Shown: positions 13,528 through 45,950 of the stretch, piece by piece
Position numbering within the stretch: position 1 is the stretch's first letter
Layout of the letters: the number at the start of each line of letters is the position of its first letter
Sequence record: MK250017.1
Direction: 5' to 3' (one strand)
Length of the DNA: 64,000 bases
Program-made: the position numbers and the translations under genes
The notes under the pieces: generated by a model
Database searches by the model: none
Seen by the model: the letters and a program-made list of their open reading frames with translations, nothing else
What the model was told of the DNA's origin: nothing

Positions 13528-13537
13528 CAAAGATACA
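13528..13537 (-). promoter_or_regulatory. Bacteroidetes primary-sigma -7 promoter element (TGTATCTTTG)
   Basis: Matches TAnnTTTG; one of 9 intergenic copies of the same 10-mer. Confidence 0.7.
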
Positions 13538-13672
13538 TATTTTCCATGAAATAAAAAAAATAATATATATAAAAAATAAATATTTCTCCTGTATCGCATT
13601 ATTTTTAACTTACCTTAATACTTTACTATATAAGATATTTGGATGCGATACAGAAGAAATATGATATGAAAT

Positions 13673-13984
13673 TTAAGATTCTATGTCATCATCGTCATCA
13701 TCTACTTTAGATGTATCAACTAATTTGACATTATCAGTATTCATAATTGCAATAGTGTGAGGTTCTCTAAAATTACGACCTTTATAATTTGAATCATATT
13801 CACAAATAACAGGTTCTGTATTTTTATCTCGTGTGAATCTATTAGGCATAAAACATGGATCAATTCGTACTTTACCTGATGGCATAAATCCAACTACAAC
13901 TCCTACACGAGCCTCTGCATAACCTGGGTCACCATATGCCACAAAATCTCCAATTTTAATTTCTCTATCTAAAATATCCTTCAT
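13673..13984 (-). CDS. Hypothetical protein (SH3/KOW-like N-terminus)
   Basis: MKDILDREIKIGDFVAY, typical small phage beta-barrel start. Confidence 0.5.
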   Translation of the reverse strand: MKDILDREIKIGDFVAYGDPGYAEARVGVVVGFMPSGKVRIDPCFMPNRFTRDKNTEPVICEYDSNYKGRNFREPHTIAIMNTDNVKLVDTSKVDDDDDDIES

Positions 13985-14112
13985 ATAAAAATAATTTAAA
14001 AAATATTAAAAAATACAAACAAACACTGTGCTTTTCCCATATAATTAATGTTTGTTTGTATTAAATGTTTCTAATCTAAAAATATAATATTAAATTTAAG
14101 GTAATAAGGTAT

Positions 14113-14475
14113 TTATGAAATTTCATATTTATATTCTACCGTAAACTCAGATGATTCATAATCATTATCTAGTTTATCCCAACAATAAGGATTATCTGCA
14201 AAATCATCTGCTAAATGATGTTTACAATATGAATCTTTTAATGTTTCATTTGGAAGAATAATATTAATTCTTACATCATTTTCATCATCTGTATGTTGTA
14301 CATACAAATATGAACCAGTTTCTTTATGCATATAAAGAAGATTATTATACCATGATATATTATCACAATATACAAGTTCCTTTCGATTAATGATAATATT
14401 TGTACCTGCAGGATAATCATTACCATTAATTAATGCTCTAAGTAACTTAGCTAATGTTATAGTATTCATAATCAA
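14113..14475 (-). CDS. Hypothetical protein
   Basis: 120-aa ORF. Confidence 0.55.
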   Translation of the reverse strand: MIMNTITLAKLLRALINGNDYPAGTNIIINRKELVYCDNISWYNNLLYMHKETGSYLYVQHTDDENDVRINIILPNETLKDSYCKHHLADDFADNPYCWDKLDNDYESSEFTVEYKYEIS

Positions 14476-14483
14476 TTATTATT

Positions 14484-14702
14484 TTAACAATATTCAGATG
14501 CTTCATGTTCAGCATTATCATAACCATCATTATATGCTAAACCATAAATTTCAGAAACAATATTTGCTATTTTATCAATATCTGTTTCTTTAATTTTTAA
14601 TTTAGATAACAATGGTAACATCTCTTTATGAAACTTATCAGATGCTTCACATTTACCAAAGAAGTCACCAGAACCGATATAATATGTTTTATTTTTATTC
14701 AT
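14484..14702 (-). CDS. Hypothetical protein
   Basis: 72-aa ORF downstream of TGTATCTTTG. Confidence 0.55.
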   Translation of the reverse strand: MNKNKTYYIGSGDFFGKCEASDKFHKEMLPLLSKLKIKETDIDKIANIVSEIYGLAYNDGYDNAEHEASEYC

Positions 14703-14732
14703 AATTTATTTTATCTTTATTAATTTATATAA

Positions 14733-14742
14733 CAAAGATACA
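14733..14742 (-). promoter_or_regulatory. Bacteroidetes-type -7 promoter element
   Basis: TGTATCTTTG on minus strand. Confidence 0.7.
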
Positions 14743-14764
14743 CATATTTTATGAAATAAAAAAA

Positions 14765-14977
14765 TTAAATGATAGAATCATCTTCATCTTGTTCAACTTT
14801 ATATGTATATCTTGGGTCAAAAGGTTCTGCATAATTAAGATCTACACACATTGCATATATCATAATAAATGGAAATGGAATAATTAAACCGAGATAAAAT
14901 AATATCTGTTGTAAACGGTAAATCAATACATCATTCCATTTGTACTTTTGTTTGTTCTTTGTTTTTATTAGTCTCAT
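14765..14977 (-). CDS. Small membrane protein
   Basis: 70 aa, one hydrophobic segment. Confidence 0.5.
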   Translation of the reverse strand: MRLIKTKNKQKYKWNDVLIYRLQQILFYLGLIIPFPFIMIYAMCVDLNYAEPFDPRYTYKVEQDEDDSII

Positions 14978-15281
14978 TTTCTTCTTTCATCTTTTTCATT
15001 GCTACAAATATCTCACATAATGATGCAAGTTGATTTTCATGATCATGTTCAAATGATATAAATTCTCGGCATTCTTTTTCTTTAATATCAGGAAACATAT
15101 AAGAAGGTATTTCACCACCTAATTGTCTGGAAAGTTCCCATTTCCCTGTTGAATTATTAAATATAGGAGTATCATAAAATACATGAAGTTTCCCATATAG
15201 TTCTAATTCATCATGAAATTTAGGATGTTCACCTCGTTCATCACGTGCTAAATAAATTGATAGAACTTTATTTTTACTCAT
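14931..15281 (-). CDS. Hypothetical protein
   Basis: 116-aa ORF, IYLARDE start. Confidence 0.55.
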   Translation of the reverse strand: MSKNKVLSIYLARDERGEHPKFHDELELYGKLHVFYDTPIFNNSTGKWELSRQLGGEIPSYMFPDIKEKECREFISFEHDHENQLASLCEIFVAMKKMKEENETNKNKEQTKVQME

Positions 15282-15288
15282 AATTGTA

Positions 15289-15555
15289 TTATTTTAGTTT
15301 ACGACCACAAATTGGACAATAATTGATATTTAATTCAACATCAAAATCATAACTATATGCATTTGAATCATGGTGCATTATTAATGTATTTGTATCTGTA
15401 TTGATATGCATAGATGAAAAATCGTCATCACAAATTGTATCAAGTTGTATTACATCTATATTATCAACCATCTTATATTTTGGTAATCCTCTTCGACTAT
15501 AACCATCAAATACTTCTTTAAGACCAATCTTAGTCTTTTCACAATATTTACACAT
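15289..15555 (-). CDS. Small zinc-ribbon protein
   Basis: MCKYC ... INYCPICGRKL. Confidence 0.6.
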   Translation of the reverse strand: MCKYCEKTKIGLKEVFDGYSRRGLPKYKMVDNIDVIQLDTICDDDFSSMHINTDTNTLIMHHDSNAYSYDFDVELNINYCPICGRKLK

Positions 15556-15565
15556 TACTTATAAA

Positions 15566-15937
15566 TTATTTAGTCCAATTATTAATATATCCATATGTAT
15601 TTCTACATACATTTGAATATTTCTCATCTATATTTTTATGATGATTAATAAATTCATCTTCTGATAGAAATTCTGTTTCATACCAAAAATTACAATCATT
15701 TCCATCACTACACTGATAATGATGTTCAATCATATTTTTATCTGAATTCCATTTTAATGTATCACCATAATTATATAATGTTTTATTTGTTTTCTTTAAA
15801 TAAGAAACAATTTCTTCCCATGTTTTGAAACCTTTTGTTTTCCAAAACATTTCTTCTTCTTTTTTCTGCTGAATCTTTACTTTCTCTTCTTCACGATCAA
15901 AAGATTCCTTAAGCTGTGATAAAATAATATTATCCAT
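15566..15937 (-). CDS. Hypothetical protein
   Basis: 123-aa ORF. Confidence 0.55.
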   Translation of the reverse strand: MDNIILSQLKESFDREEEKVKIQQKKEEEMFWKTKGFKTWEEIVSYLKKTNKTLYNYGDTLKWNSDKNMIEHHYQCSDGNDCNFWYETEFLSEDEFINHHKNIDEKYSNVCRNTYGYINNWTK

Positions 15938-16139
15938 TTGTTACATTTTTAGATTCAACAATAAAACCGTTTCCGATTTCTCTTGCAACACGAGATGCAT
16001 ACTCAATGTTATTATATACGCCATAATACCAGTTACCATCAGGACATTCCCTTGCAACTGTATATCTATAATCATTAATATATTCAGAAAATCTTGCTGG
16101 AAGATTCTTAATAATATGTCTTGGATCAATATTTGCCAT
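15930..16139 (-). CDS. Hypothetical protein
   Basis: 69-aa ORF downstream of TGTATCTTTG. Confidence 0.55.
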   Translation of the reverse strand: MANIDPRHIIKNLPARFSEYINDYRYTVARECPDGNWYYGVYNNIEYASRVAREIGNGFIVESKNVTNG

Positions 16140-16168
16140 AATTTTATATTTTTAAATTTTTTATATTA

Positions 16169-16178
16169 CAAAGATACA
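16169..16178 (-). promoter_or_regulatory. Bacteroidetes-type -7 promoter element
   Basis: TGTATCTTTG on minus strand. Confidence 0.7.
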
Positions 16179-16200
16179 CATTTGTTTTTAAATAAAAAAA

Positions 16201-17142
16201 TTATTCTGGAAAAACTTCTATATTTTTTAAATTCCTAAAATCTGATACATTATATTTTAATGTTAACTTAATCACATTTCCATATAATACACAGTTACCT
16301 CTTGATATTTCTACATTTCTTGAACTTTGACAAAATATTCCAGCTCCATCATTATATCGTTCACATCTAATTAATCTTGCATGTTCACGTAATGCTTTAT
16401 CAGAATATAAACAATTTACAGTATTACCTAAATTATCTCTTAATATAAATGAGAAATAACCTAATCTTGTAATTGTGTTTACTGCTTCATTAAATTTATT
16501 AATCTGAAATTTAACATACTCATTTGACATATCATAATGTTTGTATGCATCGGACAACGCTTTATTATATACATTTTGAAATGTATTTTGCTGTATAATA
16601 TTATCTGTACATTTAATACTAATATTAAGAATTACTTTATTTCCATATATAACCGGTTCATCAACATCCAATTTATAATTATAACATTTTGTTGAAATAT
16701 CTGTAAGCTTTTCTAATATATGATTAAATGAAATATGTACACTTTCATTATTAGAACCTGTTACTTCATTATTTGCTATTAATGAAGAACCATTTATGGA
16801 AACAGATGAACCATGATTATTAACATATTTGTTTAACTTATCAACTGATACAATAACATTCAGTTTAATTGTTTTTGTTGATTCATTATATTCTATTTCT
16901 TTATATGACTTAATATAACCATTTGTGATCATTACAGTTTCATCTGTAAATAAGTCTTCTGTATTAATTGATGAACGTGATGATATATAAGTTCCATATG
17001 CATCTGCAAGAGCAAATCTCAATGCAGATAAAGTAGCTTCTTGTTTATTCTTACCAGTACCACAAGATTTTACCAAAACATCATTACAATAACAATTAAT
17101 ACATGTTATATAAAGAAATAAAAATATAATGAATCGTTTCAT
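16201..17142 (-). CDS. Exported protein, LPP20-like N-terminal domain
   Basis: Signal peptide MKRFIIFLFLYITC; GTGKNKQEATLSALRFAL motif. Confidence 0.5.
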   Translation of the reverse strand: MKRFIIFLFLYITCINCYCNDVLVKSCGTGKNKQEATLSALRFALADAYGTYISSRSSINTEDLFTDETVMITNGYIKSYKEIEYNESTKTIKLNVIVSVDKLNKYVNNHGSSVSINGSSLIANNEVTGSNNESVHISFNHILEKLTDISTKCYNYKLDVDEPVIYGNKVILNISIKCTDNIIQQNTFQNVYNKALSDAYKHYDMSNEYVKFQINKFNEAVNTITRLGYFSFILRDNLGNTVNCLYSDKALREHARLIRCERYNDGAGIFCQSSRNVEISRGNCVLYGNVIKLTLKYNVSDFRNLKNIEVFPE

Positions 17143-17146
17143 AACT

Positions 17147-17692
17147 TTACTTTTTTAATTTAATAAAATATATATAAATATCAGAATTTTTAGCTGATAC
17201 TTTCTTTAACATCTGCAAATGACTAACTTCACCCATTGATGTTTGAACAATTTCATCTGTAAATATATAATTATCAGAATTATGTGAATTTTCATTCATA
17301 TTAACTGATGTTACTGCATCAATATCAGAATTATCTGAATTATTATCATCGTTAGAATCTTCTGTATAGAAATTTGATTCCATATTTTCTATATTATATG
17401 TAGAATAAGATCTGTTTCTTGCTCCACGTAAAAATTCAATAACAGATCTTGTTGCTTTCATATGTGCAATACGATCACAATATTCAGGATTTCTGCTATT
17501 TGCAATTTTAACGACTGATACCAAAACAGGACCATTAGATGTTTTATATACAGAACAACCAGTTACATTATTTTCAACATATTCTGTTACTACTTTATTT
17601 CGTAGTAGAATTTTATTCTTTTCAGATAGAACTTGAGAAAAACTAAATGTAAAAGAAAATAAACAAATTAGAAATGATATAATATATTTCAT
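17147..17692 (-). CDS. Exported protein (LPP20-related)
   Basis: Signal peptide MKYIISFLICLFSFTFSFS; RIAHMKATRSVIEFL. Confidence 0.5.
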   Translation of the reverse strand: MKYIISFLICLFSFTFSFSQVLSEKNKILLRNKVVTEYVENNVTGCSVYKTSNGPVLVSVVKIANSRNPEYCDRIAHMKATRSVIEFLRGARNRSYSTYNIENMESNFYTEDSNDDNNSDNSDIDAVTSVNMNENSHNSDNYIFTDEIVQTSMGEVSHLQMLKKVSAKNSDIYIYFIKLKK

Positions 17693-17744
17693 AATCTTAA
17701 TTATAATTAATGTTATACTATGTTTTACTTAATTTTATTTAATG

Positions 17745-18422
17745 TTACTCATCATGATTAGGTTCCAAAGGAATTTCTACATTCTCTGATTTCTTCTTAT
17801 CAGACTGATACTTATCAAGTTCATCCCATGCATCTATCATATCTCGCTCAAATTCTTTTTCTTTCTTAAGAAGCTGTCTATCCTGTGATTTAATATTACT
17901 AATAATATTTTCTTTATCATATTTTACACAAACTTCATAACGATACATTTGCTTATATCGATTATAATACTTTTGACACTTTATAACATTGATACCTTCT
18001 ACAATACCCTTACATGCATTGACAACCTGTTCACGTGTCTTATTACTGATAGATGAACCATCATCTGTTTCAAGTTCATCATTATACATGTCAATACCAT
18101 AACGAATATACAACTCCATCTTTTTACGAAGATTAGCAGTTGCATGTGTTACTGCTTTATTATATGCAAACATCTCATTTCGAGATTCTGAAATACCATA
18201 TGCACGGATTTCACCTGTTCCTGTTTCAAGAGACAATTGCATAATAGGAGAAATATCTTCTACACTATAACCGTCTGATTGAGGACCATATTCCTCAATA
18301 TACTTCTGCAATCTCTGATTCTCTACACGAAGATTGTGAATCTCTGTTGTATCCTTCTTACTAGCATATGTAGTAAGTGTAACAGCAAACATTGTAACTA
18401 ATACAAAAATAAACTTTTTCAT
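17745..18422 (-). CDS. Exported LPP20-like protein
   Basis: Signal peptide MKKFIFVLVTMFAVTLTTYA; RAYGISESRNEMFAYNKAVTHA. Confidence 0.55.
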   Translation of the reverse strand: MKKFIFVLVTMFAVTLTTYASKKDTTEIHNLRVENQRLQKYIEEYGPQSDGYSVEDISPIMQLSLETGTGEIRAYGISESRNEMFAYNKAVTHATANLRKKMELYIRYGIDMYNDELETDDGSSISNKTREQVVNACKGIVEGINVIKCQKYYNRYKQMYRYEVCVKYDKENIISNIKSQDRQLLKKEKEFERDMIDAWDELDKYQSDKKKSENVEIPLEPNHDE

Positions 18423-18502: not shown

Positions 18503-18512
18503 CAAAGATACA
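18503..18512 (-). promoter_or_regulatory. Bacteroidetes-type -7 promoter element
   Basis: TGTATCTTTG upstream of the exported-protein operon. Confidence 0.7.
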
Positions 18513-18583
18513 CCTAAAAATTTAAATAAAAAAATATATTCTATATAAATTTAATATAAATAAGAAAAATATTTTTTTGATGC

Positions 18584-19540
18584 ATGGAACGATTATATAA
18601 TAATTTAATTAAATGTATATCAATATCAGTAAAGTAGGCAATAGAAGAATCGATAGGAACATTACAAATAGATAATAACATTGATAAAATTTATAATGAT
18701 ATAGAAAATCATATATATAAAAATAATAAAATAAACTATAATGATTATAAAAATATTATATAGTTTAATGAACATGATAATTTATATATGTTAACATATA
18801 ATGATATATGTAATATAAAGAATTTATAGATTATTATATGTGAAAATCCAGATATTATGTATACAGAAGCAGCAGCATTAATAGATAATAAAGAATATAC
18901 AATTTTAGGTTCAGATGAAATTATATTAGCAACATTAATTATATATAATCCAGATGAATTACGGTTCTTAAAGAATCATTTATATCATGAAATAAGACAT
19001 TATTATGATACATTTAAACATATAAATTCATATAGCGGTTATGATAGGGGTATTAATTATCTATTAAATAAAGAACAGAAAGATAATAAAACATATAATA
19101 TTAATTTTTTGCAATTTAAAAAGATGTTAATGAATAATAATATACCATATCCTTTATTATAGCAAGCTATATTATCTCAATTATATTATCTAGATGAATC
19201 AGAAATTCGAGCACATACAGAAAATATGTTTGGTGAAATAGATGAGTATTTTAAACATAATAATATAGTAAATAATTCTTTAGAAAATATATCAGAAACA
19301 TATAATTTTTATAAATCAATAAAAGATGTTTTTACATATTACAAAGATAATTTATCAGAAACATATATTAACTGGTTAGTTAAAAATTTTGGTGATGATT
19401 TTTATGAAATATATTATGGTAAAATAGGACATCCTAAAAGTTTTAATTTTGTGTTTAAAAAAATTATTTATAATTGTAATAAGTTTTTTAAACATGCAGA
19501 GCAAATGAAAATATATTGTAAAAATAAGTATGAAAAGTAA
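18584..19540 (+). CDS. TAG-recoded putative zinc metallopeptidase (318 aa)
   Basis: ATG 18584; 4 in-frame TAG join fragments 18857-19162 and 19226-19540; HEIRH plus downstream ESEIRAH; TATAAATA at 18555. Confidence 0.65.
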
Positions 19541-19877
19541 TTCAATTATCATTGACTTTATAGGTGATGATTATATAGAATATTCAGATTTTTGGGAAAA
19601 TACATATTAGAATTTATCTATAGATTCTCAAATATTATATGATTCATTGCATAGTAATGTTATATACAATATATTTGATGAAATAAAATTATATATAAGA
19701 GAAAATATTGATCACCTTGATTTAACAATATATGATTATTATCTTTTACATTATTTGATTCCAGATAAAGAATCATTGAAGAAATATGTATTAAATAAAA
19801 TGGAAAATATAACAGATAATGTTATTGATGATGTATTTAATAAAATAGAAGAACTTAAAAATAAACAAGAAAATTAA
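19530..19877 (+). CDS. TAG-recoded hypothetical protein
   Basis: ATG 19530, one TAG, joins track ORF 19647-19877. Confidence 0.55.
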
Positions 19878-19932: not shown

Positions 19933-21849
19933 ATGACAACAAAGAAATTAACGATTGAACAGAAGTATAAAAGTATGACAGAAGTTGAACATATCCTCCA
20001 GAAATCTGGTATGTGGATCGGTTCAATTAATAAAGAAGATAAGAATTTATATGTTTATGACAATGATAATTGTAAGATGATTATGAAAACAGTCTCATAT
20101 ATTCCAGCGGTTTTAAAGTTAGTAGATGAGATTATTTCAAATTCAGTAGACGAATATAGAAGAATTGATAATTTAGGACTTACAAACCTTGATGTGAAAA
20201 TTGATACAAACGGTTTTATTACTATTAGAGATAATGGTGGTATTCCTGTTGTAAAACATAAAGAAGCTGGTATTTATGTACCTACCTTTTTGTTTGGTTC
20301 TCTGCGAACTTCATCAAATTATAATGATGATGATTCACGAGATGGTGTAGGAACAAATGGTGTAGGTTCTGCTATTACAAACGTATGGTCAACACAATAT
20401 GAAGTAAGTACAGCAGACGGAAAGAATTCATATCATCAAACATGGTCTAATAATATGAATATAAATGATGATCTAGAAATAAAGAAATGTTCGAAGAAAG
20501 ATCATTATACAGAAACAAAGTTTAAGTTAGATTTTAAGAGACTTCATGAAACAGTAGATACATGTTTCTCTGAAGATTTTATTAATATCATAGAGAAAAG
20601 ATGTATTGATGCTGCTGCTGCAAATGTTGGATTAAATGTACATTTTTCATATACAGATAATGACAAGGTTATCAGAGAATCAGAATGGCATTTCAAAACA
20701 TTTGATGAATATATTGAATTATTTACTGATTATGTAGATACAGAACAAATGTTGAAATTCTCTGATTCTATTATGCAAGTATGGGTATTTCCTGATAATG
20801 GAATTAATGTCGGATTTGTAAATGGTGCTGAATGTTCAAGAGGAACACATATCAGAGCCGTTAGAAATGAGATTAACAATGCTATTTCTGCTTATCTTTT
20901 ATCTAAAGAAAAGATTGACATTACACCAAAGAATGTAGATGGAAAGTATTCAATGTTCTGTACATTCCATGTTAATAATCCATCATATGATTCACAGACA
21001 AAGGAATGTTTGACAACTGTTGTTGAGAAATTCAGTAATGATTCTAAATATACATTTAAAGTTCCTGATGCATTTATTAAGAATGTATTAAAATCTGAGA
21101 TTGTTGATATAGTAATTGATTGGTATAAGCAAAAATGTGAAGTTGAAGATCAGAAAACACTTCGAAAACTTAATAGGCAAGCAAAGACTAAGATTAGAAA
21201 TAACGATAAATTCATTGATGCAAATTCAAAACGAACAGCAGATAGAGAACTTTGGATATTTGAGGGTGATTCTGCACGTGCAGGATTCAGAGGTGCTCGT
21301 GACCCACAAACACAAGCGGCATATATGTTGAGAGGTGTTATTTTGAATGTTATCGGATTACCGCCAACAAAAATTATGGCAAATAAAGAGTTATCTGATT
21401 TGTTTAATATTATCGGTTTACAATGGGGTGAACCAATCGATGTAAAGAAACTTAATTTCAGTAAATTAGTTATTGCAACAGATGCTGATTTTGATGGTAG
21501 TAAAATTGCTGGATTGCTTTTAACATTCTTTAATTTATGGCCAGAATTATTTGAAGCAGGAATTGTATGTAGAAGTATTACACATATTATTACTGCAACT
21601 AAAGGTAATGATGTACAAGGGTTCTTTACAATGGAAGACTTCAAAAAGAAAGAAGATAAATTAAAGGGTTATAAGATCACATATAATAAAGGTCTTGGTG
21701 GATTAACAGCAACAGAATATAAAGAGATGATGCGTAATCCTATTTTACATTATTATACTAAAGATGATTTAGCAGATATGACTATTAAATCATGGTTTGG
21801 TAAAGGTATTGCAAAAACTCGTAAAGATATGCTTAAAAATGAAGTTTAA
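19933..21849 (+). CDS. DNA topoisomerase II, ATPase/TOPRIM subunit (T4 gp39+60-like, GyrB-like)
   Basis: GHKL motifs EIISNSVDE, DNGGIP, GTNGVG; TOPRIM IFEGDSA, TDADFDG, YNKGLG. Confidence 0.95.
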   Translation: MTTKKLTIEQKYKSMTEVEHILQKSGMWIGSINKEDKNLYVYDNDNCKMIMKTVSYIPAVLKLVDEIISNSVDEYRRIDNLGLTNLDVKIDTNGFITIRDNGGIPVVKHKEAGIYVPTFLFGSLRTSSNYNDDDSRDGVGTNGVGSAITNVWSTQYEVSTADGKNSYHQTWSNNMNINDDLEIKKCSKKDHYTETKFKLDFKRLHETVDTCFSEDFINIIEKRCIDAAAANVGLNVHFSYTDNDKVIRESEWHFKTFDEYIELFTDYVDTEQMLKFSDSIMQVWVFPDNGINVGFVNGAECSRGTHIRAVRNEINNAISAYLLSKEKIDITPKNVDGKYSMFCTFHVNNPSYDSQTKECLTTVVEKFSNDSKYTFKVPDAFIKNVLKSEIVDIVIDWYKQKCEVEDQKTLRKLNRQAKTKIRNNDKFIDANSKRTADRELWIFEGDSARAGFRGARDPQTQAAYMLRGVILNVIGLPPTKIMANKELSDLFNIIGLQWGEPIDVKKLNFSKLVIATDADFDGSKIAGLLLTFFNLWPELFEAGIVCRSITHIITATKGNDVQGFFTMEDFKKKEDKLKGYKITYNKGLGGLTATEYKEMMRNPILHYYTKDDLADMTIKSWFGKGIAKTRKDMLKNEV

Positions 21850-37893: not shown

Positions 37894-37903
37894 TGTATCT
37901 TTG
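37894..37903 (+). promoter_or_regulatory. Bacteroidetes-type -7 promoter element
   Basis: TGTATCTTTG. Confidence 0.7.
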
Positions 37904-37933: not shown

Positions 37934-38308
37934 ATGGTATTAAATATAGACGATTTTGAAGTATTGAAATTTTATGGGTATACAAGTCTAATACCTATAA
38001 ATGCTCGTATTAATGAAGTGTCATCAATAGATGATAATCCTCGTGAACAGCTTCGTTATAAAAAGTTAGAATCCTTTTATAATAAGGTAATTGAAAAAGC
38101 AAAGGAAAAATGTACAAATAAAAGTTTTAAGTATTGCCATTTTGAAGATAATAAATGTGTATTTTGTTTATCACATATTAAAACAGGTCATATTATCTAT
38201 ATAGGTAAATATGATTTTGAAATATCGATTGGCCTTGATTTTAAACAGCGTTTTGGTCCATCATATAATTTTTTATTTAATAAAGAATCATATAAGAATG
38301 AAGAGTAA
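37934..38308 (+). CDS. Hypothetical protein
   Basis: 124-aa ORF. Confidence 0.55.
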   Translation: MVLNIDDFEVLKFYGYTSLIPINARINEVSSIDDNPREQLRYKKLESFYNKVIEKAKEKCTNKSFKYCHFEDNKCVFCLSHIKTGHIIYIGKYDFEISIGLDFKQRFGPSYNFLFNKESYKNEE

Positions 38309-38450: not shown

Positions 38451-38783
38451 ATGGTTATACATAAAGCAGAAAAATGTAATATTAATAATGTATCAGAAAA
38501 TAAAATACATGATAGTACATCAGGTTATAATAGTTTAATTATATTTTTTATCATTACTGTAATTACGACAGTTGTATATGCAATAACAGTTTATCCTGCT
38601 GCATGTTCAAGAGAATCTGTAATTACAAATAAAGATACAGAAACAAAATTTAAAATGATATTGAGAGACAAATATATTGATAATGTATTTCTTGAAAATA
38701 TTAGTCAAAATTCATGGAATTCAATAGAAGTATATGATTCAAATATGAAATCTCATAAAATTATTTGGAAAGAAGTAAAATAA
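38451..38783 (+). CDS. Small membrane protein
   Basis: 110 aa, one TM segment. Confidence 0.5.
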   Translation: MVIHKAEKCNINNVSENKIHDSTSGYNSLIIFFIITVITTVVYAITVYPAACSRESVITNKDTETKFKMILRDKYIDNVFLENISQNSWNSIEVYDSNMKSHKIIWKEVK

Positions 38784-38837: not shown

Positions 38838-40907
38838 ATGAAGAATTTTATTTTGTGTTTGCTCATTTCATTTGTGAGCGTTTTTAATTCTTATGCAGAC
38901 ACTGTAAATGATACATTGACTGCATTGAAGTTGAAGGAAGTTACCGTAACTTCTTTGTATCGAAATAATGTACAGACTGGTAGTATGATTAATACATCTA
39001 CTATTAAGATGATGAATCATGGTCAGGGTACAGATTATGTACTTTCTACATTGCCTAATATTTATGCATATAATGACAATGGTACGCAAATGGGTTATTG
39101 TTATTTCCGTATGCGTGGTATGGGTCAGGAACGTATGAATGTTACATTGGATGGAATGCCATGGAATGAAGCTGAAGATTTCGGATGTTATTTCAGTAAT
39201 TCTCCTGATCTTATGTCTAGTTTGCATTCTATTAAGGTAGAAAAGGGTGCATCAGTAACTAATAACGGTACAGCTGCATATGCTGGTAATGTTTCTCTGG
39301 AATCAGTAGATTTGAGAAAAGATACAGATTCGTGGTTTGACCTTGGTTATGGATCTTTTAATTCATCACGTGTGAGTGGAGTGTATAATATGGGTTTGAA
39401 GAACCATTGGGGATTGCATGTTCGTGCAACATCACAGCAAACTGATGGTTATAAGGAAAATACATATAATAATTCAAAGTCAATTACACTTAAGACTGGT
39501 TATTTCTTTAATGATAAGCATTCACTCGATTTCTTGACAATGACTGGTTATCATCGTAATGGTCAAGGTTTTATGGGTCTTACAGAAGATATGATTCCTA
39601 AGCATCCTACACCATTTAAGCAAATGAAGTCTGGTAATCGTCAACAGGAAACAGATGATTTCTTGACAACTTATAATAGATTTCAATATAAGGGAATTCT
39701 ATCAGATAAGGTCTTCTTGTCATCATCATTGTATTGGCAACATCAGACTGGTAATTATCGTATTGGATGGGATGATCCTTCACGACCTACTGGAAGTGTA
39801 TTGAATAATTATCATCTTAATTATAATCTTACAGGATTTAACACAGTAATTAAGTATTATCCAGCTAATAATCTTTCACTTACAACTGGTGTAAATGCAT
39901 ATGTTTATCATAGACGTCATAAGGGATATGATATTGCAAACTCTGATAGTATTATTACAGCATGGAAGAATCCAGGACTTACTCCTTATTATGATAATGC
40001 AGGAACAAAACCAGATGTAAATGTATTTGCAAATGTAAAGTATCAACCAATTAATAAGTTTACTATTGATGCTGCACTTCAATATCGTTATACATCACTT
40101 CATTATCGTGTAAATACACCAGCTATTGGTATTAATGGTGATTCTGATTTTAATCATGACTGGAATTTTATGAATTACAGTTTTGGACTTACATATGATA
40201 TTGATAAGTATTCAAAGGTATATGCACGTTATGCAGTCACAAACCGTGAACCTTCCAGAACTGATATGTTCGGCGGTGAATATCGTACAGATGAATCTGA
40301 AATGAATACAAAGTCAGAGCGCGTACATGATGTTGAACTTGGTTATGAAATTCGTAATAATAAGATTAATTTCAATATTAACGGTTTTTATATGAATTTC
40401 AGTAATGAACTTGTTGCAACAGGTGAACTTTCATCAATGAATGGTCTTCCTCTCCATAAGCAGCATGATTCATATCGACTTGGTTTGGAACTTGCGATGG
40501 ATTATAATCCTGTTAATACATTGCATCTTATTGCAAATGCTTCATGGTCAGAGAATAAGTTGAAGAACATTAATGGAAAGGAAATGAATCATACATTCTC
40601 ACCATCATCTACATTGTTTGCTGAAGCAAATTATTCTGTTAATAAGATTAAGTTCGGTGTAAATACGAATTTCCGTTCATCTATGTATATGGATATTTAT
40701 AATAATCATCAGCTTAAGGAAAACCTTACACTTAATGCATATGTTAATGCACGAGTATCAAAGATTGTAGAACTTAGTTTGAATCTTAATAATATTACGA
40801 ATCGTTTGAATTTCTCTAACGGATCAGTTGATATTCCATCAGATATAGCATATTATTTGGTTGATTCACCATTTAATATGTTTGCGACAGCTAAGTTTCA
40901 CTTTTAA
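38838..40907 (+). CDS. TonB-dependent outer-membrane receptor (vitamin/pyridine-nucleoside type)
   Basis: Signal peptide, TonB-box-like LKEVTVT, plug motif RMRGMGQERMNVTLDGMPWNEAED..VEKGA, barrel strands, C-terminal AKFHF; 689 aa. Confidence 0.9.
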   Translation: MKNFILCLLISFVSVFNSYADTVNDTLTALKLKEVTVTSLYRNNVQTGSMINTSTIKMMNHGQGTDYVLSTLPNIYAYNDNGTQMGYCYFRMRGMGQERMNVTLDGMPWNEAEDFGCYFSNSPDLMSSLHSIKVEKGASVTNNGTAAYAGNVSLESVDLRKDTDSWFDLGYGSFNSSRVSGVYNMGLKNHWGLHVRATSQQTDGYKENTYNNSKSITLKTGYFFNDKHSLDFLTMTGYHRNGQGFMGLTEDMIPKHPTPFKQMKSGNRQQETDDFLTTYNRFQYKGILSDKVFLSSSLYWQHQTGNYRIGWDDPSRPTGSVLNNYHLNYNLTGFNTVIKYYPANNLSLTTGVNAYVYHRRHKGYDIANSDSIITAWKNPGLTPYYDNAGTKPDVNVFANVKYQPINKFTIDAALQYRYTSLHYRVNTPAIGINGDSDFNHDWNFMNYSFGLTYDIDKYSKVYARYAVTNREPSRTDMFGGEYRTDESEMNTKSERVHDVELGYEIRNNKINFNINGFYMNFSNELVATGELSSMNGLPLHKQHDSYRLGLELAMDYNPVNTLHLIANASWSENKLKNINGKEMNHTFSPSSTLFAEANYSVNKIKFGVNTNFRSSMYMDIYNNHQLKENLTLNAYVNARVSKIVELSLNLNNITNRLNFSNGSVDIPSDIAYYLVDSPFNMFATAKFHF

Positions 40908-40951: not shown

Positions 40952-41014
40952 AATTATTTCATATTTATCAATAATTATAAATTAATTATAAATAAGATAA
41001 TGAAAATATAAAGA

Positions 41015-42307
41015 ATGATTTATTTAGAAAAAATGAGTAAATGGAAATTAAATGAAAATAGTATAAACGAATTTTTATGGACATGTGCAGGTGTTAATAA
41101 GAATATATTAAGATTATATCCGAGTGAATATGCAAAATATGCAGGTAGTGGAGGAACTATTTTATTTACTGCTATGATGGCATTTATATCAGGTAGTTAT
41201 GCAATGTTTTTTGTATTCAGTAATGCTATATTATCACTGATCTTTGGTATATTCTGGGCATTACTTATATTTAACCTTGACAGATTTATTGTTAATTCCA
41301 TGCATACTGATGGTAAAGACACATTAAGTTGGAAAAAGATTCAAACGGCAATGCCACGTATAATTATGGCTATATTTTTAGGTATTGTTATTTCAACACC
41401 ACTTGAAATGAAGATATTTAATGATAGAATAGAATCATAGTTACTAAAAGATAATATAGAACGAATAAATTCAGCAAAGAATGAATCATCAGATTATAAA
41501 ACAATATCATTATTACAAGCAGAATAGAACCAATTGACAAAAGATCGAAAACAACTGGTAGATGATTTACAGAAAGCATAGAAAGAACTGAAAGAAGAAG
41601 CAGAAGGAAATGCATTATCTGGTATTGCTGGGCATGGGACTATATATAGAGATAAAGAAACATATGTTAATCAATGTAAACAATCATTATAGGAATGGGA
41701 TCTTCTTCATAAAGAACGGTTGACAACTGTATAGAAACGTATTGATGAAGTTAATAAGCATATTGAAAAATTTGAAGGTAAAATAGATGGTTTAAGAGAA
41801 GATGGTTTCAGCGCAAGGTATGAAGCTTTTTCAAATCTTAAAGAAGCAAATAATTCATTAGCGATGGTATCATTCATGATAACAATGTTGTTCATTATTA
41901 TTGAAGTTACACCTACATTTTTTAAACTTATTATGACATCAGGGCCATATGAAGAACATTTATAGATAGAAAATTATAAAATAACCGCATATGTTACTAA
42001 AGAGAAAAATGGTATTGATACAGAATTAAAAATAGATGATTATAATAATAAAGAAAAATTAAAAGCTGTTATTAAACAAGATGAACCTATTATTGATGTA
42101 ACAGATGTATCAGTAAAACCTATTGTATATTCAGCTATATAGTCATTAACATTAGAATCAGAACAAGAACCTGAAGAAGTTCCATATATAAAGTCTAATA
42201 CATCTATTATAACAACACCTGTTGCAACAAAGAAATTAGAATTTAAGAAAAATGAGAAAGGACAAATTATGTTAGATTTCTCATCAAGACCTAAAAAATT
42301 AAATAAA
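41015..42307 (+). CDS. TAG-recoded DUF4407-like membrane coiled-coil protein (430 aa)
   Basis: FLWTCAG, IFNLDRFIV, PRIIMA..GIVISTPLEMKIF, IEVTPTFFKL; 7 TAG. Confidence 0.75.
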
Positions 42308-42372
42308 TGAAATAAAAATAATATCCATTAAGAAAAAAACTTAGTGGATATTTTTTTATATAAAGAATTATA

Positions 42373-42382
42373 TGTATCTTTG
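42373..42382 (+). promoter_or_regulatory. Bacteroidetes-type -7 promoter element
   Basis: TGTATCTTTG. Confidence 0.7.
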
Positions 42383-42418: not shown

Positions 42419-43426
42419 ATGAGTGAATTAATGTTTAAGAGTAAGAATGTAACACCACAGTTGAATACTTATGTTATTAAGGTAACAGGTAAGTATAATG
42501 ATCATCTACCATGGGAAACAAATATTATTAATGTAGAAGCAGATCGCATGAATAATTTTGTGTTGTTATTTCTTGCATATGTTGGTAACAGAAATTGGCA
42601 GCATAAATGGAAGAATTCTACATTCGGCGAGAATTTTAAGAAGGGACCACTGCAGACATATCTAGGTGCTTTTACCGAAGATACACATTATCCATGTATG
42701 GACCTTATGTGGAATGATGTTGTTTCAGTCAACATTAATTATGTTAATAATAATGGTACATACATTTTGTGTGAACTTCCTGATGTAGAAGAGCTGTATG
42801 ATACTGAGGAGGATTTCCTCAAGGAACTTAAGTCACAGTTTGATGAATTTAATAAGAATGATCCTCGTGATGTTTATGAAGATGAAGGAATTGAGATTGT
42901 TGATTCATATGAGCTTGAGCTTGTAAGAAATGTTCTTCGTTCTACTGGTAAGTGGGATAATGATGAAATTGATAATCTGTTTTGGGTTGATCGTGAGATT
43001 GGTTTTAGTTCATTGGTTGCACGTACTTCTACAGATGAAAATATTCTTAAAGTATGTAAGCAGGAACATGCTAAGAGTGCAACAGGTGTTGAGTATAATG
43101 GATTTAAACCAGAAACACTCGAAAAGATTAAGACCGCTATTAGTGGAACAAATCTTCCAGAGGAAACTAAGACATTTGTAATTGACATTTGTTCTAAGTA
43201 TAATTCAAAGAATATGTTGAGTGAATCTGAGAAGGAAGATCTTAAGAATATCATGGAAACATATAATTTGGTAAATTATTCATATGGATGGATTGGCCCA
43301 GATGGTTGGAGTGGTATTTACCTTGAGCATGTGATAGATCCAGAGATGATTGATTTCGATGATTATTCAGAGAATTCAGTTATTAAGTATGAGGGTGAAA
43401 CATATATTATTCATGAAGGAGATTAA
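42419..43426 (+). CDS. Hypothetical protein
   Basis: 335 aa, AAG/CTT-rich codon usage like the highly expressed genes. Confidence 0.65.
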   Translation: MSELMFKSKNVTPQLNTYVIKVTGKYNDHLPWETNIINVEADRMNNFVLLFLAYVGNRNWQHKWKNSTFGENFKKGPLQTYLGAFTEDTHYPCMDLMWNDVVSVNINYVNNNGTYILCELPDVEELYDTEEDFLKELKSQFDEFNKNDPRDVYEDEGIEIVDSYELELVRNVLRSTGKWDNDEIDNLFWVDREIGFSSLVARTSTDENILKVCKQEHAKSATGVEYNGFKPETLEKIKTAISGTNLPEETKTFVIDICSKYNSKNMLSESEKEDLKNIMETYNLVNYSYGWIGPDGWSGIYLEHVIDPEMIDFDDYSENSVIKYEGETYIIHEGD

Positions 43427-43429: not shown

Positions 43430-43852
43430 ATGTTAATTATTCTATCAATAGTATTAATTATTGTAGGATTATTTCTTGGAATTTTAATAGGTACTTTAGG
43501 ATCATTTGGTGATTCTGAAATACCTATTAAAGAAGATAAAATAATCAAGAGATGTTTGTTATTTAATATAGCATCTCGGTGTGATAAAATTATACTTGTA
43601 TGTTGTACACCATTCGGATGGTTAGGAATTCTTTTATTATTTGTATGTTGTTTTGTATTTCAACATATTATAGGAATTATGTTTATTAGTCCTTTACCTA
43701 TGATGGAATTTCTTAATACATTTGAAGACAAAATATATAGTTTTGCACTACTATATTTAGTACCTATGTTTGGTGGTTATTTTATAGGTTATAATTATAT
43801 GAATAATTTTATTAAACGAATAGAAAAAGAAGAACATGAAGAAAGGAACTAA
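43430..43852 (+). CDS. Membrane protein (about 3 TM)
   Basis: Hydrophobic segments. Confidence 0.55.
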   Translation: MLIILSIVLIIVGLFLGILIGTLGSFGDSEIPIKEDKIIKRCLLFNIASRCDKIILVCCTPFGWLGILLLFVCCFVFQHIIGIMFISPLPMMEFLNTFEDKIYSFALLYLVPMFGGYFIGYNYMNNFIKRIEKEEHEERN

Positions 43853-44330
43853 ATTTTATGTTATATTAGGTTATAATACAGAAACAGAAGCCTGGTATGG
43901 ATATGTAGAAAATTCTTTTTCTATGGGTGCAGATAAAAATAGAATTAGAACATTTTCTACATGTAGAGCAGATTATCCTTGGAAAGATAGATCATTTTCA
44001 GAGAGAAAACGAATAGCGAAAGCATATTTGAAGAAACATGGTTATAGATGTAATTATGCTCGTGATTATATTATAGATGCAAAGATGAATCCTAATTCAC
44101 CAAATCAATGGATTTATTTTTATTTGCGAGATATTGTAGACAATCTTAATAAAAAACATTATAATAATTGTTATTGGAAAGTATATAGAGTAAATTCTAA
44201 GTTTTGTCCTATTAATGTAAATATGAATGAATATTACAAAACATTAGTAAATAAGAAATTTAGGAAGTCTCTTGACAAATTTCAATTAAGAAATCAAGAA
44301 TTTTCTGTAAAGGAAGTTTCAAAAGATTAA
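43836..44330 (+). CDS. Hypothetical basic protein
   Basis: 164-aa ORF. Confidence 0.55.
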   Translation: MKKGTKFYVILGYNTETEAWYGYVENSFSMGADKNRIRTFSTCRADYPWKDRSFSERKRIAKAYLKKHGYRCNYARDYIIDAKMNPNSPNQWIYFYLRDIVDNLNKKHYNNCYWKVYRVNSKFCPINVNMNEYYKTLVNKKFRKSLDKFQLRNQEFSVKEVSKD

Positions 44331-44337
44331 AAATATA

Positions 44338-44592
44338 TCGGTATGGCTCTAAAGGAGAGAGCATCATTTATGACTAATGATGACGAAGATTTGTTCGTAA
44401 GTTAATCTTTACTAAGAGAATATACAATATTTAGTTATATAGAAGTAATTTAATTGTTATAATGCGAAGACAATTTTATATGAAACTATATATGTCATTT
44501 ATGAGATTATAGTGAAGAATAGCATTTACAGTAACTATAATAAGATGATATAAACAATATAACTTCTGTGGTTCGATTCCACACGTACTGAC
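44338..44592 (+). ncRNA. tRNA-like RNA with 186-nt insert in the variable region (TGA at anticodon position)
   Basis: Acceptor tcggtatg/cgtactga, D stem gctc/gagc, stem tcatt/aatga with loop tatgact, T arm tgtgg-ttcgatt-ccaca. Confidence 0.65.
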
Positions 44593-44610
44593 TAATAAAC
44601 ATATAACATT

Positions 44611-44829
44611 ATGAAAGAAGAAATTAAATTCTTAGGTAAAACACCGAGAGAAATTGCAGAACGTTACTTCAATAAATCATATGAAGGTAAAGAACGATAT
44701 GATATTTTAGTTGAAGGCTTTATTGAGGGATTTAATTATCTATTTCCTCATTATGATATAGCTAATACTTTGGTTGAAACATTTGAACGAATTAAAGAAT
44801 TAGAGAATAAAGAGAAAAAAGATTCATAA
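44611..44829 (+). CDS. Hypothetical protein
   Basis: 72-aa ORF. Confidence 0.5.
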   Translation: MKEEIKFLGKTPREIAERYFNKSYEGKERYDILVEGFIEGFNYLFPHYDIANTLVETFERIKELENKEKKDS

Positions 44830-44854
44830 TTATTTTTTTAATTGAAATAAAATA

Positions 44855-44864
44855 TGTATCTTTG
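44855..44864 (+). promoter_or_regulatory. Bacteroidetes-type -7 promoter element driving the ncRNA island
   Basis: TGTATCTTTG; no ORF downstream. Confidence 0.7.
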
Positions 44865-44870
44865 TATTGT

Positions 44871-44974
44871 AAATAATGAACACCTATAAGTGTTAAGTAA
44901 CATAGGTATGGAAACCCTACGGTTCGTAAGTAGTAATATCGAATAGTCCGCATAATAGGAACATGTCATTATTT
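44871..44974 (+). ncRNA. Candidate ~104-nt structured small RNA
   Basis: 9-bp terminal stem aaataatga/tcattattt starting at the expected +1; internal cctat/atagg and ttcg/cgaa stems. Confidence 0.4.
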
Positions 44975-45014
44975 TAACATTTATATAAGAATATACTACA
45001 TGTCTTATATGAGC

Positions 45015-45355
45015 GTCAGGAGTATTGTAACAGAGTCGACGTGTTTACATTTTTAGAGGCGCAGTTTTTAAATCTGACTATTCTATGTAAAGTAGTGAAG
45101 TGCAAGATACGGCGTCAGTACAAGTCTATATAATAAGTTGCAAATAAAAATAGAAACTGTTAAAATTCGTATCTAAATTTGTCTGTATTTCACAATGGTC
45201 AATGAGGTACATGAAAAGTGATTTGGAAGAATCATTATAGACATATTATGATTAAGATAACGTTCAACTAAGCTATAGAATAATAGTAAGTATAGCGCTG
45301 AAAATATATGTTTATATGTATTGCGGTTGTGGTTCGAATCCACATACAGACACGA
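45015..45355 (+). ncRNA. ssrA: Atypical tmRNA
   Basis: gagtcgac (cf. GAUUCGAC), helix-2 pairing tattctat/atagaata, actaagctataga (cf. ACUAAGCAUGUAG), resume context taagttGCA, T arm tgtgg-ttcgaat-ccaca; about 340 nt. Confidence 0.7.
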
Positions 45356-45360
45356 CTTAT

Positions 45361-45860
45361 TAATGATGAAAAGTCTGCACTTAACAAAATATAAAAAACA
45401 TTTTAATGTACTGTTGATTATATGTTTTAATTTTGTTAAATAAGAGATTATTGTAAATTATAGAAATTTACAAATCGAGGGGAACGCATAACGGCAATTA
45501 TGTTAGTACTTGGCGTTTAATGAAATGAATATGTATATTTGCCGATATGCATATGAGTGACATTAAATGATAAAATTATAATAGTGTAGCGGTTCGCACG
45601 CCCGTTGGTAAAACGGGAAGGGTTTATGTTTGAAAGCATATTAGGGGTTCGACTCCCGCTTATAAACAATTAAATTACATAATGTTCTCACGAAGAGCGA
45701 GCATCGGAAGGTGAGCAATTTAGAAAGATGTTTAAGAGTGATCATATTAAATTGATTTCTAACAGAAATACGGTGACGTAGGAGCTGAAAAAGAACAAAC
45801 GTATGGTAATGTTAGCATTATGTATTTAAAAAATATTAGTCCTCACAGACTTTACATTTT
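45361..45860 (+). ncRNA. Candidate large ornate ncRNA with kissing loop and embedded cloverleaf
   Basis: Closing helix aaagtctg/cagacttt plus aatg/catt; at least 8 internal stems; loop-loop cggcaa/ttgccg; terminator follows. Confidence 0.6.
45575..45667 (+). tRNA. Degenerate class-II tRNA-like cloverleaf, Tyr(GTA) by loop centre
   Basis: Acceptor ttataa/ttataa, D arm gtgt/gcac, cccgt-tggtaaa-acggg, long variable arm, T loop ttcgact with only 3-bp stem. Confidence 0.45.
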
Positions 45861-45891
45861 TTATAACTTTAAAATTTTGAATTTAATATTA

Positions 45892-45925
45892 AATCCGATG
45901 CTTGTGGTAAGTATCGGATTTTTTT
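45892..45925 (+). terminator. Intrinsic terminator closing the ncRNA island
   Basis: aatccgatgctt-gtggt-aagtatcggatt followed by a T run. Confidence 0.8.
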
Positions 45926-45940
45926 AATTCATAAAAAATA

Positions 45941-45950
45941 TGTATCTTTG
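45941..45950 (+). promoter_or_regulatory. Bacteroidetes-type -7 promoter element
   Basis: TGTATCTTTG upstream of nadR. Confidence 0.7.

Follow-up and report, generated by a model that had tools for sequence, protein, structure and literature searches.

Two short promoter-like elements in the genome of Prevotella phage Lak-A1, a gut megaphage, are tied to two different uses of the codon TAG. The DNA analysed, a stretch of 64,000 nucleotides referred to here as the window, corresponds at 100% identity to the terminal 64,000 bases of the 541,724-bp circular record MK250017.1, such that window position 33000 is MK250017.1:510724. One element, motif A, is a conserved cassette built around the 10-mer TGTATCTTTG, and selection keeps TAG out of the units that it heads; the other, motif B, is an ATAAATA box 18-38 nucleotides ahead of the start codon, behind which TAG is permitted, and the phage encodes a homologue of the T4 late sigma factor gp55 whose gene is itself recoded. 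We consider it probable that these features represent two transcription programmes coinciding with two codon regimes, and that the code switch lies upstream of the switch to late transcription. The timing and sigma usage that we infer are that host sigma-A acts on motif A, gp55 acts on motif B, and suppression of TAG precedes gp55 activity.

Lak phages have been described as reading TAG as glutamine (Devoto 2019, PMC6784885), and the exchange of CAR and TAG codons at conserved glutamine sites between Lak-A1 and its relative Lak-B1 confirms this assignment. Open reading frames (ORFs) of at least 100 codons cover 85% of the window when TAG is treated as sense versus 69% when it is not, in a genome with a GC content of ~26%. 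For genome-wide analysis, MK250017.1:1-477,724 was joined to the window, in which the runs of N at 650-11404 and 61379-61497 were masked, and genes were called by ORF and codon-score selection with TAG as sense. Among the resulting 576 genes, 366 had no in-frame TAG and 210 had some, for a total of 1,282 TAGs, while TAA was the terminator of 512.

Motif A is an invariant cassette aimed at downstream genes

Nine copies of TGTATCTTTG are present in the window against 0.34 expected, and none of 100 shuffles reached this number. All nine are intergenic and aimed at the downstream gene, and they agree copy for copy, in position and strand, with those reported by an earlier reading of the DNA made without database searches (the sequence-only reading). 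Genome-wide we found 55 exact copies, 53 of which carry a T-tract, giving a cassette with the layout A-TTTTTTTATTT at -23 to -12, an A-rich spacer, TGTATCTTTG, and then TAttGT. Only two near-variants (one or two mismatches) with a good flank were found, making the core essentially invariant. Of 57 sites, 49 lie 2-101 nucleotides (nt) ahead of a same-strand ATG (median 36 nt, interquartile range 29-40), with the remaining copies situated ahead of tRNA arrays or non-coding RNA or representing two chance copies within genes. No downstream RNA common to the ORF-less sites was found. A hairpin (z < -2) lies upstream of 22 of the 55 copies, and a tandem pair at genome positions 452,006 and 452,123 leads into a large tRNA array.

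The first genes behind motif A belong to 49 different BLAST families. In a subset of cassettes (genome 34,141; 64,556; 163,028; 427,200; others), a near-identical leader of ~45 nt, TATTGTTAATGAAATAATAAACAATTAAAAAATAAAGATTATG, is followed by first codons that encode MNT..., although the proteins are unrelated, which suggests spread of the cassette or gene conversion.

Genes behind motif A exclude TAG

The sequence-only reading had claimed that promoter class predicts the genetic code of the genes downstream, and a genome-wide contingency test of promoter against TAG had been set beforehand. The association passed this test, in support of the interpretation made in that reading, as genes directly behind motif A were TAG-free in 47 of 49 cases versus 319 of 527 for all others (p = 4e-8), with 2 TAGs in 8,723 codons of the former and 1,280 in 150,921 codons of the latter. 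When the first genes of the two classes were compared with each other, 45 of 47 behind motif A and 29 of 115 behind motif B were TAG-free (p = 7e-18). Within the window, 28 genes in motif A units (5,017 codons) contain no TAG, while 22 genes in motif B units (7,661 codons) contain 66. In Lak-A1 the two exceptions behind motif A carry TAG close to the 3' end, one at codon 56 of 58 and the other at codon 358 of 380. Reading on would run into the following gene, and both are most simply taken as true stops of the standard code. The rule is one-sided, in that motif A excludes TAG and motif B permits TAG without requiring it. The timing model would account for this asymmetry, since genes translated before the switch must avoid TAG and genes translated after it are free to use it. 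The narrower expectation that the genes behind the nine window copies lack TAG and end in TAA was borne out for eight; the copy at 44855 precedes a non-coding stretch and tRNA-Tyr, and a TAA ending does not discriminate, being found in 46 of 49 first genes behind motif A and 107 of 115 behind motif B.

The shuffles, the expectation from TAG density, family collapse and the turnover test described below respectively ruled out chance, gene length, paralogy and recent host origin as causes of the association. At the TAG density of motif B genes, 10.7 of the 47 first genes behind motif A would be expected to be TAG-free, versus the 45 seen, and the family-collapsed test gave p = 1e-17. Propagating the class along co-directional genes yielded 2.7 (motif A) versus 10.9 (motif B) TAGs per 1,000 codons. 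As for the few TAGs in motif A units, single ones tend to lie at the very end of a gene (13 of 22, compared with 12 of 51 for motif B units; p = 0.006), and the others fall in TAG-dense inserted genes with 5-17 TAGs, among them GIY-YIG and further homing endonucleases, within tRNA arrays or beside tRNA genes.

TAG-dense genes with 5-14 TAGs were observed beside or between tRNA genes at genome 176,755-177,525, 446,452-447,270, 449,618-450,508 and 318,655-319,458 and at window 55216-56208. At least the first (GIY-YIG) and the last (HNH-like) are homing endonucleases, and such inserts seem to be the sole genes that need the new code in otherwise TAG-free units.

Exclusion of TAG is maintained by selection

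Lak-B1, a phage of baboon origin with ~79% nucleotide identity to Lak-A1, was taken whole for genome-wide statistics and for four named loci, all of them outside the masked runs. Its genome contains 55 copies of motif A versus 3 of a reversed control, and its first genes are TAG-free in 44 of 45 cases behind motif A (plus 2 of 2 with both motifs) versus 30 of 116 behind motif B (p = 2e-18), the sole exception having TAG as its final codon, 135 of 135. In four orthologous spacers of Lak-A1 and Lak-B1, the 10-mer and the T-tract are identical while the flanks have diverged.

Glutamine sites were then compared over 456 reciprocal-best orthologue pairs. Motif B units had 1,011 CAR-CAR, 440 CAR-to-TAG (either direction) and 399 TAG-TAG sites, and motif A units had 507, 13 and 13, respectively, corresponding to a CAR-TAG turnover of 440/1,451 (30%) in motif B units and 13/520 (2.5%) in motif A units (p = 7e-50). 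Although proteins of motif A units are more diverged (mean identity between the two phages of 68%, versus 73% in motif B units), their turnover is far lower, which indicates that selection keeps TAG out of motif A units.

Motif B is a positioned ATAAATA box

An unbiased k-mer comparison of the regions upstream of TAG-containing and TAG-free genes yielded two signals, motif A, which was depleted, and ATAAATA, which was enriched. Among genes with an intergenic spacer, ATAAATA occurs 18-38 nt upstream of the ATG in 90 of 149 TAG-containing versus 33 of 198 TAG-free genes (p = 2.5e-17), with a sharp peak at 20-35 nt. The 123 sites at 18-38 nt have no conserved -35 element (information content ~0 upstream) and share a conserved AA 4 nt downstream. 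The commonest 8-mer is AATAAATA and the consensus is NATAAATA, which, like TATAAATA, is known as the late box of phages carrying g55 (PMC2984593).

The sequence-only reading had placed TATAAATA, described as T4-late-like, ahead of many TAG-containing genes. Its five sites are real, each 20-25 nt from the ATG of the gene that it precedes, and the genes contain 11, 4, 7, 2 and 3 TAGs in turn. The caveat raised in that reading, that the same 8-mer precedes the TAG-free gp52 gene, proved correct at 29384-29391. The bare 8-mer is not itself enriched in the window (33 found versus 37.6 expected); the true box is NATAAATA, and only its positional signal is real. The T4-late-like label fits a phage that encodes a gp55 homologue.

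Among TAG-free genes, 32 carry motif B, where flanking positions would predict ~6.5. Looking for a third promoter motif among the 150 long-spacer genes that lack both elements yielded only ACTTTTT(A), the tail sequence of intrinsic terminators, and this candidate was rejected. A TAG-containing family of ten paralogues found genome-wide also has no recognised promoter motif.

The gp55-like sigma factor gene is itself recoded

Three sigma-family proteins are encoded by the phage: one ECF-like, one RpoD-like and one gp55-like. The ECF-like protein (316 amino acids) is TAG-free and lies in a motif A unit in both clades, while the RpoD-like gene has 4 TAGs in Lak-A1 and none in Lak-B1 and is preceded by motif B in both. 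The gp55-like gene, at genome 185,395-185,880 on the minus strand, matches phrog_234 ('late sigma transcription factor', 9e-11) and, weakly, Sigma70_r2 (19 bits), and by tblastn its product matches proteins annotated as late sigma factors in Sinorhizobium, Xanthomonas and Synechococcus phages. Three in-frame TAGs, at codons 20, 33 and 46 of 128, are identical in Lak-A1 and Lak-B1; all 15 Lak records are consistent with these positions, which clades A, B and C have in common. The conserved core (...EDCIQTAM...YWRSFDPE...NPFAYYT...) is downstream of all three, and the homology with late sigma factors from other phages extends across them. A stop just ahead in Lak-B1 places the true start at MEDFSKV. 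The gene is located behind the TAG-free DnaK and DnaJ genes, and the hairpin that separates it from DnaJ may be an attenuator. An ATAAATA ahead of the Lak-B1 gene was considered as a promoter and was not counted, as it falls in the hairpin loop and is absent from Lak-A1.

The machinery for the code change lies in genes readable in the standard code (RF2, the tRNA(CTA) run and the tRNA arrays), as in the scheme of Borges et al. The RF2-type release factor, with SPY and GGQ motifs, is TAG-free and within a motif A unit in Lak-A1 as well as in Lak-B1. Two tRNA(CTA) genes bearing the U1:A72 ends typical of tRNA-Gln (genome 176,652-176,724 and 177,557-177,631, minus strand) lie within a TAG-free gene run that includes FTHFS, with a GIY-YIG gene containing 11 TAGs between them. 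A strong terminator lies at ~181,500. Scanning the cluster for E. coli-type sigma-70 promoters gave no excess (132 versus 137), and because the syntenic stretch of Lak-B1 is without tRNA, it provides no footprint for a suppressor-tRNA promoter. AsiA, MotA and a Gln/Glu-tRNA synthetase were not detected in the phage. Lak-type phages lack an RNA polymerase but encode sigma factors and gp33, and gp33 orthologues occur in the jumbo-phage group containing Lak-B8 (Iyer 2021, PMC7824862).

Functions of the genes behind each motif

Motif A units in the window encode FolD, a TonB-dependent receptor and a NadR-like enzyme. Genome-wide they also encode two ClpP proteases, GrpE, CorA, TelA, OmpA, PARG, NAMPT/NAPRT and dCMP deaminase, as well as genes related to RNA and the code (PNKP, RNA ligase, a CCA-adding/poly(A) polymerase, Thg1 and RF2), and tRNA arrays likewise stand behind motif A. 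Most of the 70 motif A unit proteins scanned have no Pfam family and yet are TAG-free.

First genes behind motif B include a T4-like portal, large terminase, tail tube and protease, such that the element fronts structural and packaging genes as a T4-type late promoter does. Others encode helicases, a 5'-3' exonuclease, NrdD, TnpB/IS605 elements, homing endonucleases and the RpoD-like sigma. Because helicase, exonuclease, NrdD and topoisomerase genes stand behind motif B as well, this class is better called 'post-switch' than 'late', the term used in the sequence-only reading. The gene for the Gp23-like capsid protein crosses the origin of the record and has GATAAATA 54 nt upstream within a fully conserved leader; codon 11 of the gene is TAG in Lak-A1 and Lak-B1 alike.

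Motif A contains the -7 box of host-phylum promoters

The -7 box of Bacteroidota primary-sigma promoters is TAnnTTTG(Y), at -12 to -5 (PMC12632263, PMC9723704). Motif A contains TAtcTTTG, and the next base is T in ~46 of 53 cassette copies, in agreement with this box. We scanned 185,579 species genomes for the composite motif TTTTTATTT-N10-14-TGTATCTTTG; among the 80 matches listed, 43 were in Bacteroidota, including Segatella copri, Prevotella and Bacteroides, and the host-genome copies show the same T-tract. Defining promoter position as intergenic with an ORF start within 120 nt, 24 of the 43 Bacteroidota matches listed versus 4 of the 37 others were so placed (p = 2e-5). Each bacterial genome has a single copy among the matches listed, indicating that the multi-copy cassette is a feature of the phage. 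The phage element thus shares with the Bacteroidota primary-sigma promoter the TAtcTTTG box, its pre-gene position and the occurrence of the composite sequence ahead of Segatella, Prevotella and Bacteroides genes, and differs in a T-tract without G and in having TG-TA-TC-TTTG fixed in every copy. The 'host-sigma' label given to these operons by the sequence-only reading fits these data.

Order of events and alternative explanations

In the order of events that we favour, ~53 invariant cassettes (a T-tract over the -33 region, TGTATCTTTG as the -7 box and a leader of 30-40 nt) would drive short units readable in the standard code. As their architecture is that of Bacteroidota primary-sigma promoters, host RNA polymerase could presumably use motif A on arrival. 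The units would deliver host-takeover, chaperone and metabolic functions together with parts for the code change, namely RF2, tRNA arrays, the CCA-adding enzyme, Thg1, PNKP, RNA ligase and the ECF-like sigma. The observed constraint against TAG in these units would be explained by TAG acting as a stop for as long as host RF1 rules. The NATAAATA boxes, judged by homology, would be T4-type late promoters read by the gp55-like sigma. With three TAGs ahead of its core, an active late sigma would be made only once amber suppression works, and this need would place the change of code ahead of the switch to late transcription. A double lock, at the level of promoter and of codon, would hold back the late proteins, as illustrated by the TAG at codon 11 of the capsid gene. 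It is plausible, though we lean slightly against it, that the code switch is the trigger of the late programme and does not merely run parallel to it. In that case gp55-like mRNA would be made early along with DnaK-DnaJ and would stay untranslatable until the suppressor tRNA, helped by RF2, overcomes host RF1, at which point transcription from NATAAATA would start. If so, a translational checkpoint would control the sigma cascade, and a change of codon meaning would be the developmental clock of a virus.

Several observations weigh against this order of events. Neither motif lies near the suppressor tRNAs (genome 176,652-177,631), for which a promoter was not found. The gp55-like gene has no clear promoter of its own, and a terminator-like hairpin with a T-run (genome 185,781-185,846, minus strand), the stem of which is shared by Lak-A1 and Lak-B1 while the loop differs, lies 16 nt ahead of its ATG. 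The C-domain of the gp45 clamp (PF09116) was not found in the phage. About 25 motif B genes are TAG-free, including those for both topoisomerase II subunits, and 150 genes with spacers of at least 50 nt carry neither motif. The available RNA contigs cover both classes and come without starts or strand, and the gene set derives from our own ORF and codon-score calls and not from a curated annotation. On the side of motif A, the T-tract (-23 to -12 from the 10-mer) lies at a distance fitting a -33 element (TTTG ~19-21 nt upstream) but has no conserved G, the phage 10-mer varies far less than ordinary host promoters do, and the looser TAnnTTTG is not enriched upstream of other phage genes.

The last two of these observations mean that a phage factor could be involved, and the main rival to our reading is that motif A needs such a factor, whether the ECF-like or RpoD-like sigma or an activator, and marks a 'middle' class of phage genes and not an immediate-early one. 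The invariance of the 10-mer in 55 copies and across clades would fit this proposal, as host sigma-A promoters are degenerate (TAnnTTTG); it would also fit the lack of looser boxes elsewhere in the phage and the presence of three sigma-family genes, and the 102 TAG-free long-spacer genes with no recognised promoter could then be the true earliest class. Yet the RpoD-like sigma, with its 4 TAGs in Lak-A1 and its motif B, cannot precede the switch, while the ECF-like gene is itself in a motif A unit and ECF sigmas as a rule recognise other boxes. The motif, moreover, matches the -7 consensus of the host phylum exactly and does so in promoter position in Prevotella and Segatella, and expression only after suppression would give no reason for a near-total exclusion of TAG. 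We therefore regard a phage factor as unlikely, and the codon logic survives under it.

Two further explanations concern the absence of TAG and not the promoter. Genes behind motif A, if highly expressed over the whole of infection, might shun a slow and leaky codon, a proposal favoured by the resemblance of motif A to a consensus promoter of maximal strength and by the capsid, the most abundant late protein, which has 1-2 TAGs in ~660 codons. That the capsid gene retains a conserved TAG at codon 11 is the opposite of avoidance at the very place where it would count most, however, and the exclusion behind motif A is essentially absolute (2 in 8,723 codons) and not graded, while terminal TAGs in motif A units seem to act as true stops, which is sensible only if TAG still terminates at that time; we find an effect of expression level or translation efficiency quite improbable as the cause. 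Still less credible, to the point of being very nearly dismissed, is that these genes are TAG-free by origin, as recently acquired standard-code host genes. Host-like genes do occur in motif A units (FolD, the TonB-dependent receptor, ClpP, GrpE, CorA, RF2 and NAMPT), and DnaK, DnaJ and FTHFS are host-like and TAG-free as well, though their unit was not assigned to motif A by propagation. The same genes are, however, TAG-free in Lak-B1 at 68% mean protein identity and so are old, most of the 70 motif A unit proteins lack a Pfam family and are nevertheless TAG-free, and the turnover test (2.5% versus 30%, p = 7e-50) contradicts a recent origin.

Relation to known systems and implications

Like T4, in which early transcription uses host sigma-70 and late transcription is gp55-dependent from TATAAATA (NATAAATA in cyanomyoviruses), Lak lacks its own RNA polymerase and encodes a gp55 homologue, with a host-type promoter class ahead of takeover, nucleotide and tRNA genes and a -10-only (N)ATAAATA class ahead of the portal, terminase, tail tube and Gp23-like capsid genes. 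Unlike in T4, the early class of Lak is invariant and of the Bacteroidota -33/-7 type; AsiA, MotA and the gp45 C-domain were not detected, the NATAAATA class also fronts replication genes, and translation of the Lak gp55 would require the code change. Arbiol et al. reportedly described, in 2010, mobile early-promoter/stem-loop cassettes (PeSLs) of T4-type phages. The Lak cassette resembles these in being repeated, often as hairpin, promoter and leader, ahead of 49 unrelated families, and in that Lak-B1 keeps the cassette at 45941 with another gene; it differs in that a long leader is common to only some copies.

Stop-codon recoding has been proposed to regulate late or lytic genes (Borges et al., bioRxiv 10.1101/2021.08.26.457843), and patchy TAG use, RF2 and suppressor tRNAs were described in Lak (Devoto 2019, PMC6784885). 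Our reading shares with these studies standard-code-compatible genes that come first, a phage-supplied suppressor tRNA with RF2, and recoded structural genes. It differs in that promoters and sigma factors were not analysed there (the term 'promoter' is absent from both papers and 'sigma' from Borges et al.), whereas here the codon regimes are tied to two cis-elements at single-gene resolution, the exclusion of TAG is under selection, and a recoded late sigma would set the code switch before late transcription. The early-standard, late-recoded model is already published. The connection to promoters and the recoding of a late sigma, by contrast, appear to be new; neither Lak promoters nor such a sigma were described in the literature that the searches returned.

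The idea of early and late recoding had so far rested on the functional categories of genes with in-frame stops, and it can now be attached to defined cis-elements. Two short motifs sort most promoter-bearing genes of a 542-kb uncultured phage into 'pre-switch' and 'post-switch', and the recoded late sigma offers a concrete molecular link that is testable without culturing the phage. For annotation of Lak genomes, a rule follows in which TAG is a true stop in motif A units and glutamine elsewhere. The cassette, a compact and apparently strong promoter of Prevotella/Segatella type, could be of use in genetic tools, and the analysis provides a template for seeking the same coupling in crAss-like and other recoded phages.

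Distribution of the two motifs in the window

Four motif A units on the minus strand form a run of 14 TAG-free genes (11744-18422). The core at 13528-13537, with its T-tract 12-23 nt upstream, heads 13199-13489 and three more genes to 11744; that at 14733-14742 heads 14484-14702, 14113-14469 and 13673-13984; that at 16169-16178 heads 15930-16139 and three more genes to 14931; and that at 18503-18512 heads 17745-18422, 17147-17692 and 16201-17142. The remaining five cores are on the plus strand. The core at 21918-21927 precedes FolD (21949-22824) and 22841-23407, both TAG-free, and that at 37894-37903, which is kept at the orthologous site of Lak-B1, precedes the TAG-free genes 37934-38308, 38451-38783 and 38838-40907, the last of which encodes a TonB-dependent receptor-like outer-membrane protein (Plug and beta-barrel). 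The core at 42373-42382, conserved in Lak-B1 and with a hairpin and T-run upstream, heads the TAG-free genes 42419-43426, 43430-43852, 43836-44330 and 44611-44829. The ORF-less core at 44855-44864, also conserved in Lak-B1, is followed by a non-coding stretch and tRNA-Tyr. Finally, the core at 45941-45950, again with a hairpin and T-run upstream, heads the gene for a NadR-like NMN adenylyltransferase/kinase (45981-47141), with TAG-free genes continuing as far as 49482, and Lak-B1 keeps motif A at this site although its downstream gene differs.

Motif B occurs as TATAAATA at 3869-3876 (minus strand), 21 nt ahead of the ATG of 2954-3847 (11 TAGs), and on the plus strand at 18555-18562, 21 nt ahead of 18584-19540 (4 TAGs), which is followed by 19530-19877 (1 TAG) and the gene for a GyrB-like topoisomerase II subunit (19933-21849, no TAG). 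Further plus-strand copies of TATAAATA lie at 29384-29391, 25 nt ahead of the gene for the GyrA/gp52-like topoisomerase II subunit (29417-30841), which has no TAG and is a counter-example to motif B implying TAG; at 40987-40994, between two motif A units and 20 nt ahead of a DUF4407 gene (41015-42310, 7 TAGs); at 49530-49537, 25 nt ahead of 49563-50612 (2 TAGs); and at 52674-52681, 21 nt ahead of 52703-53737 (3 TAGs). A minus-strand copy at 58933-58940 is 25 nt ahead of 57003-58907, which encodes 634 amino acids with no TAG and no family match. The variant AATAAATA is found on the minus strand at 24933-24940, 25 nt ahead of 23448-24908 (4 TAGs); at 25728-25735, 20 nt ahead of 24950-25708 (3 TAGs); at 33544-33551, 24 nt ahead of 32372-33520 (1 TAG); and at 37841-37848, 23 nt ahead of 36802-37818 (6 TAGs), behind which lies 33551-36778 (1,075 amino acids, 12 TAGs). 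On the plus strand, GATAAATA at 59698-59705 is 26 nt ahead of 59732-61081 (10 TAGs). The Gp23-like major capsid gene (62173-64000, minus strand) is 5'-truncated by the end of the window and record, its true start being just past the origin.

Back-to-back pairs of the two motifs share single spacers at 18503-18562 (spacer of 161 nt) and 37841-37903, with TAG-free and TAG-containing genes diverging from each. A serine-recombinase/resolvase gene at 59075-59680 contains 7 TAGs, and several TnpB/IS605 genes elsewhere in the genome are also TAG-containing.

RNA evidence and further observations

RNA data were available as the assembled contigs of four metatranscriptomes, and because these cover both promoter classes they are silent on timing. 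In three of the four, the bin immediately downstream of the ORF-less motif A at 44855 shows a 5-20-fold increase in depth, and run X14 contains a 61-nt contig (44943-45003) at a depth of 25,000. The non-coding stretch on the plus strand at this position, 44870-45667, is very abundant in three RNA libraries over ~44870-45010 and ends in tRNA-Tyr(GTA) at 45575-45667; no Rfam family matched the RNA. This abundant RNA fits an active promoter at that copy of motif A and is suggestive only, as contigs break at the repeated cassette and support for the promoter is weak for this reason. 'Highly expressed intergenic regions' were reported in Lak by Devoto 2019 (PMC6784885), where RNA covers both classes too. 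The region 44870-45575 is partly conserved in Lak-B1, with substitutions, and one RNA contig has 23 other letters for 44872-45152.

In many intergenic regions, such as the upstream regions at genome 138,400 and 151,774, (G)ACTTTTTAT follows hairpins right behind stop codons. Intrinsic terminators of this kind seem to delimit most units, and in the 16-kb suppressor cluster 11 terminator-like sites were counted where 2.6 would be expected. At genome 241,527-241,599 (minus strand) lies a tRNA whose anticodon, TTA, would read TAA, the main stop codon of the phage; this tRNA is closest to phage tRNA-Lys genes.

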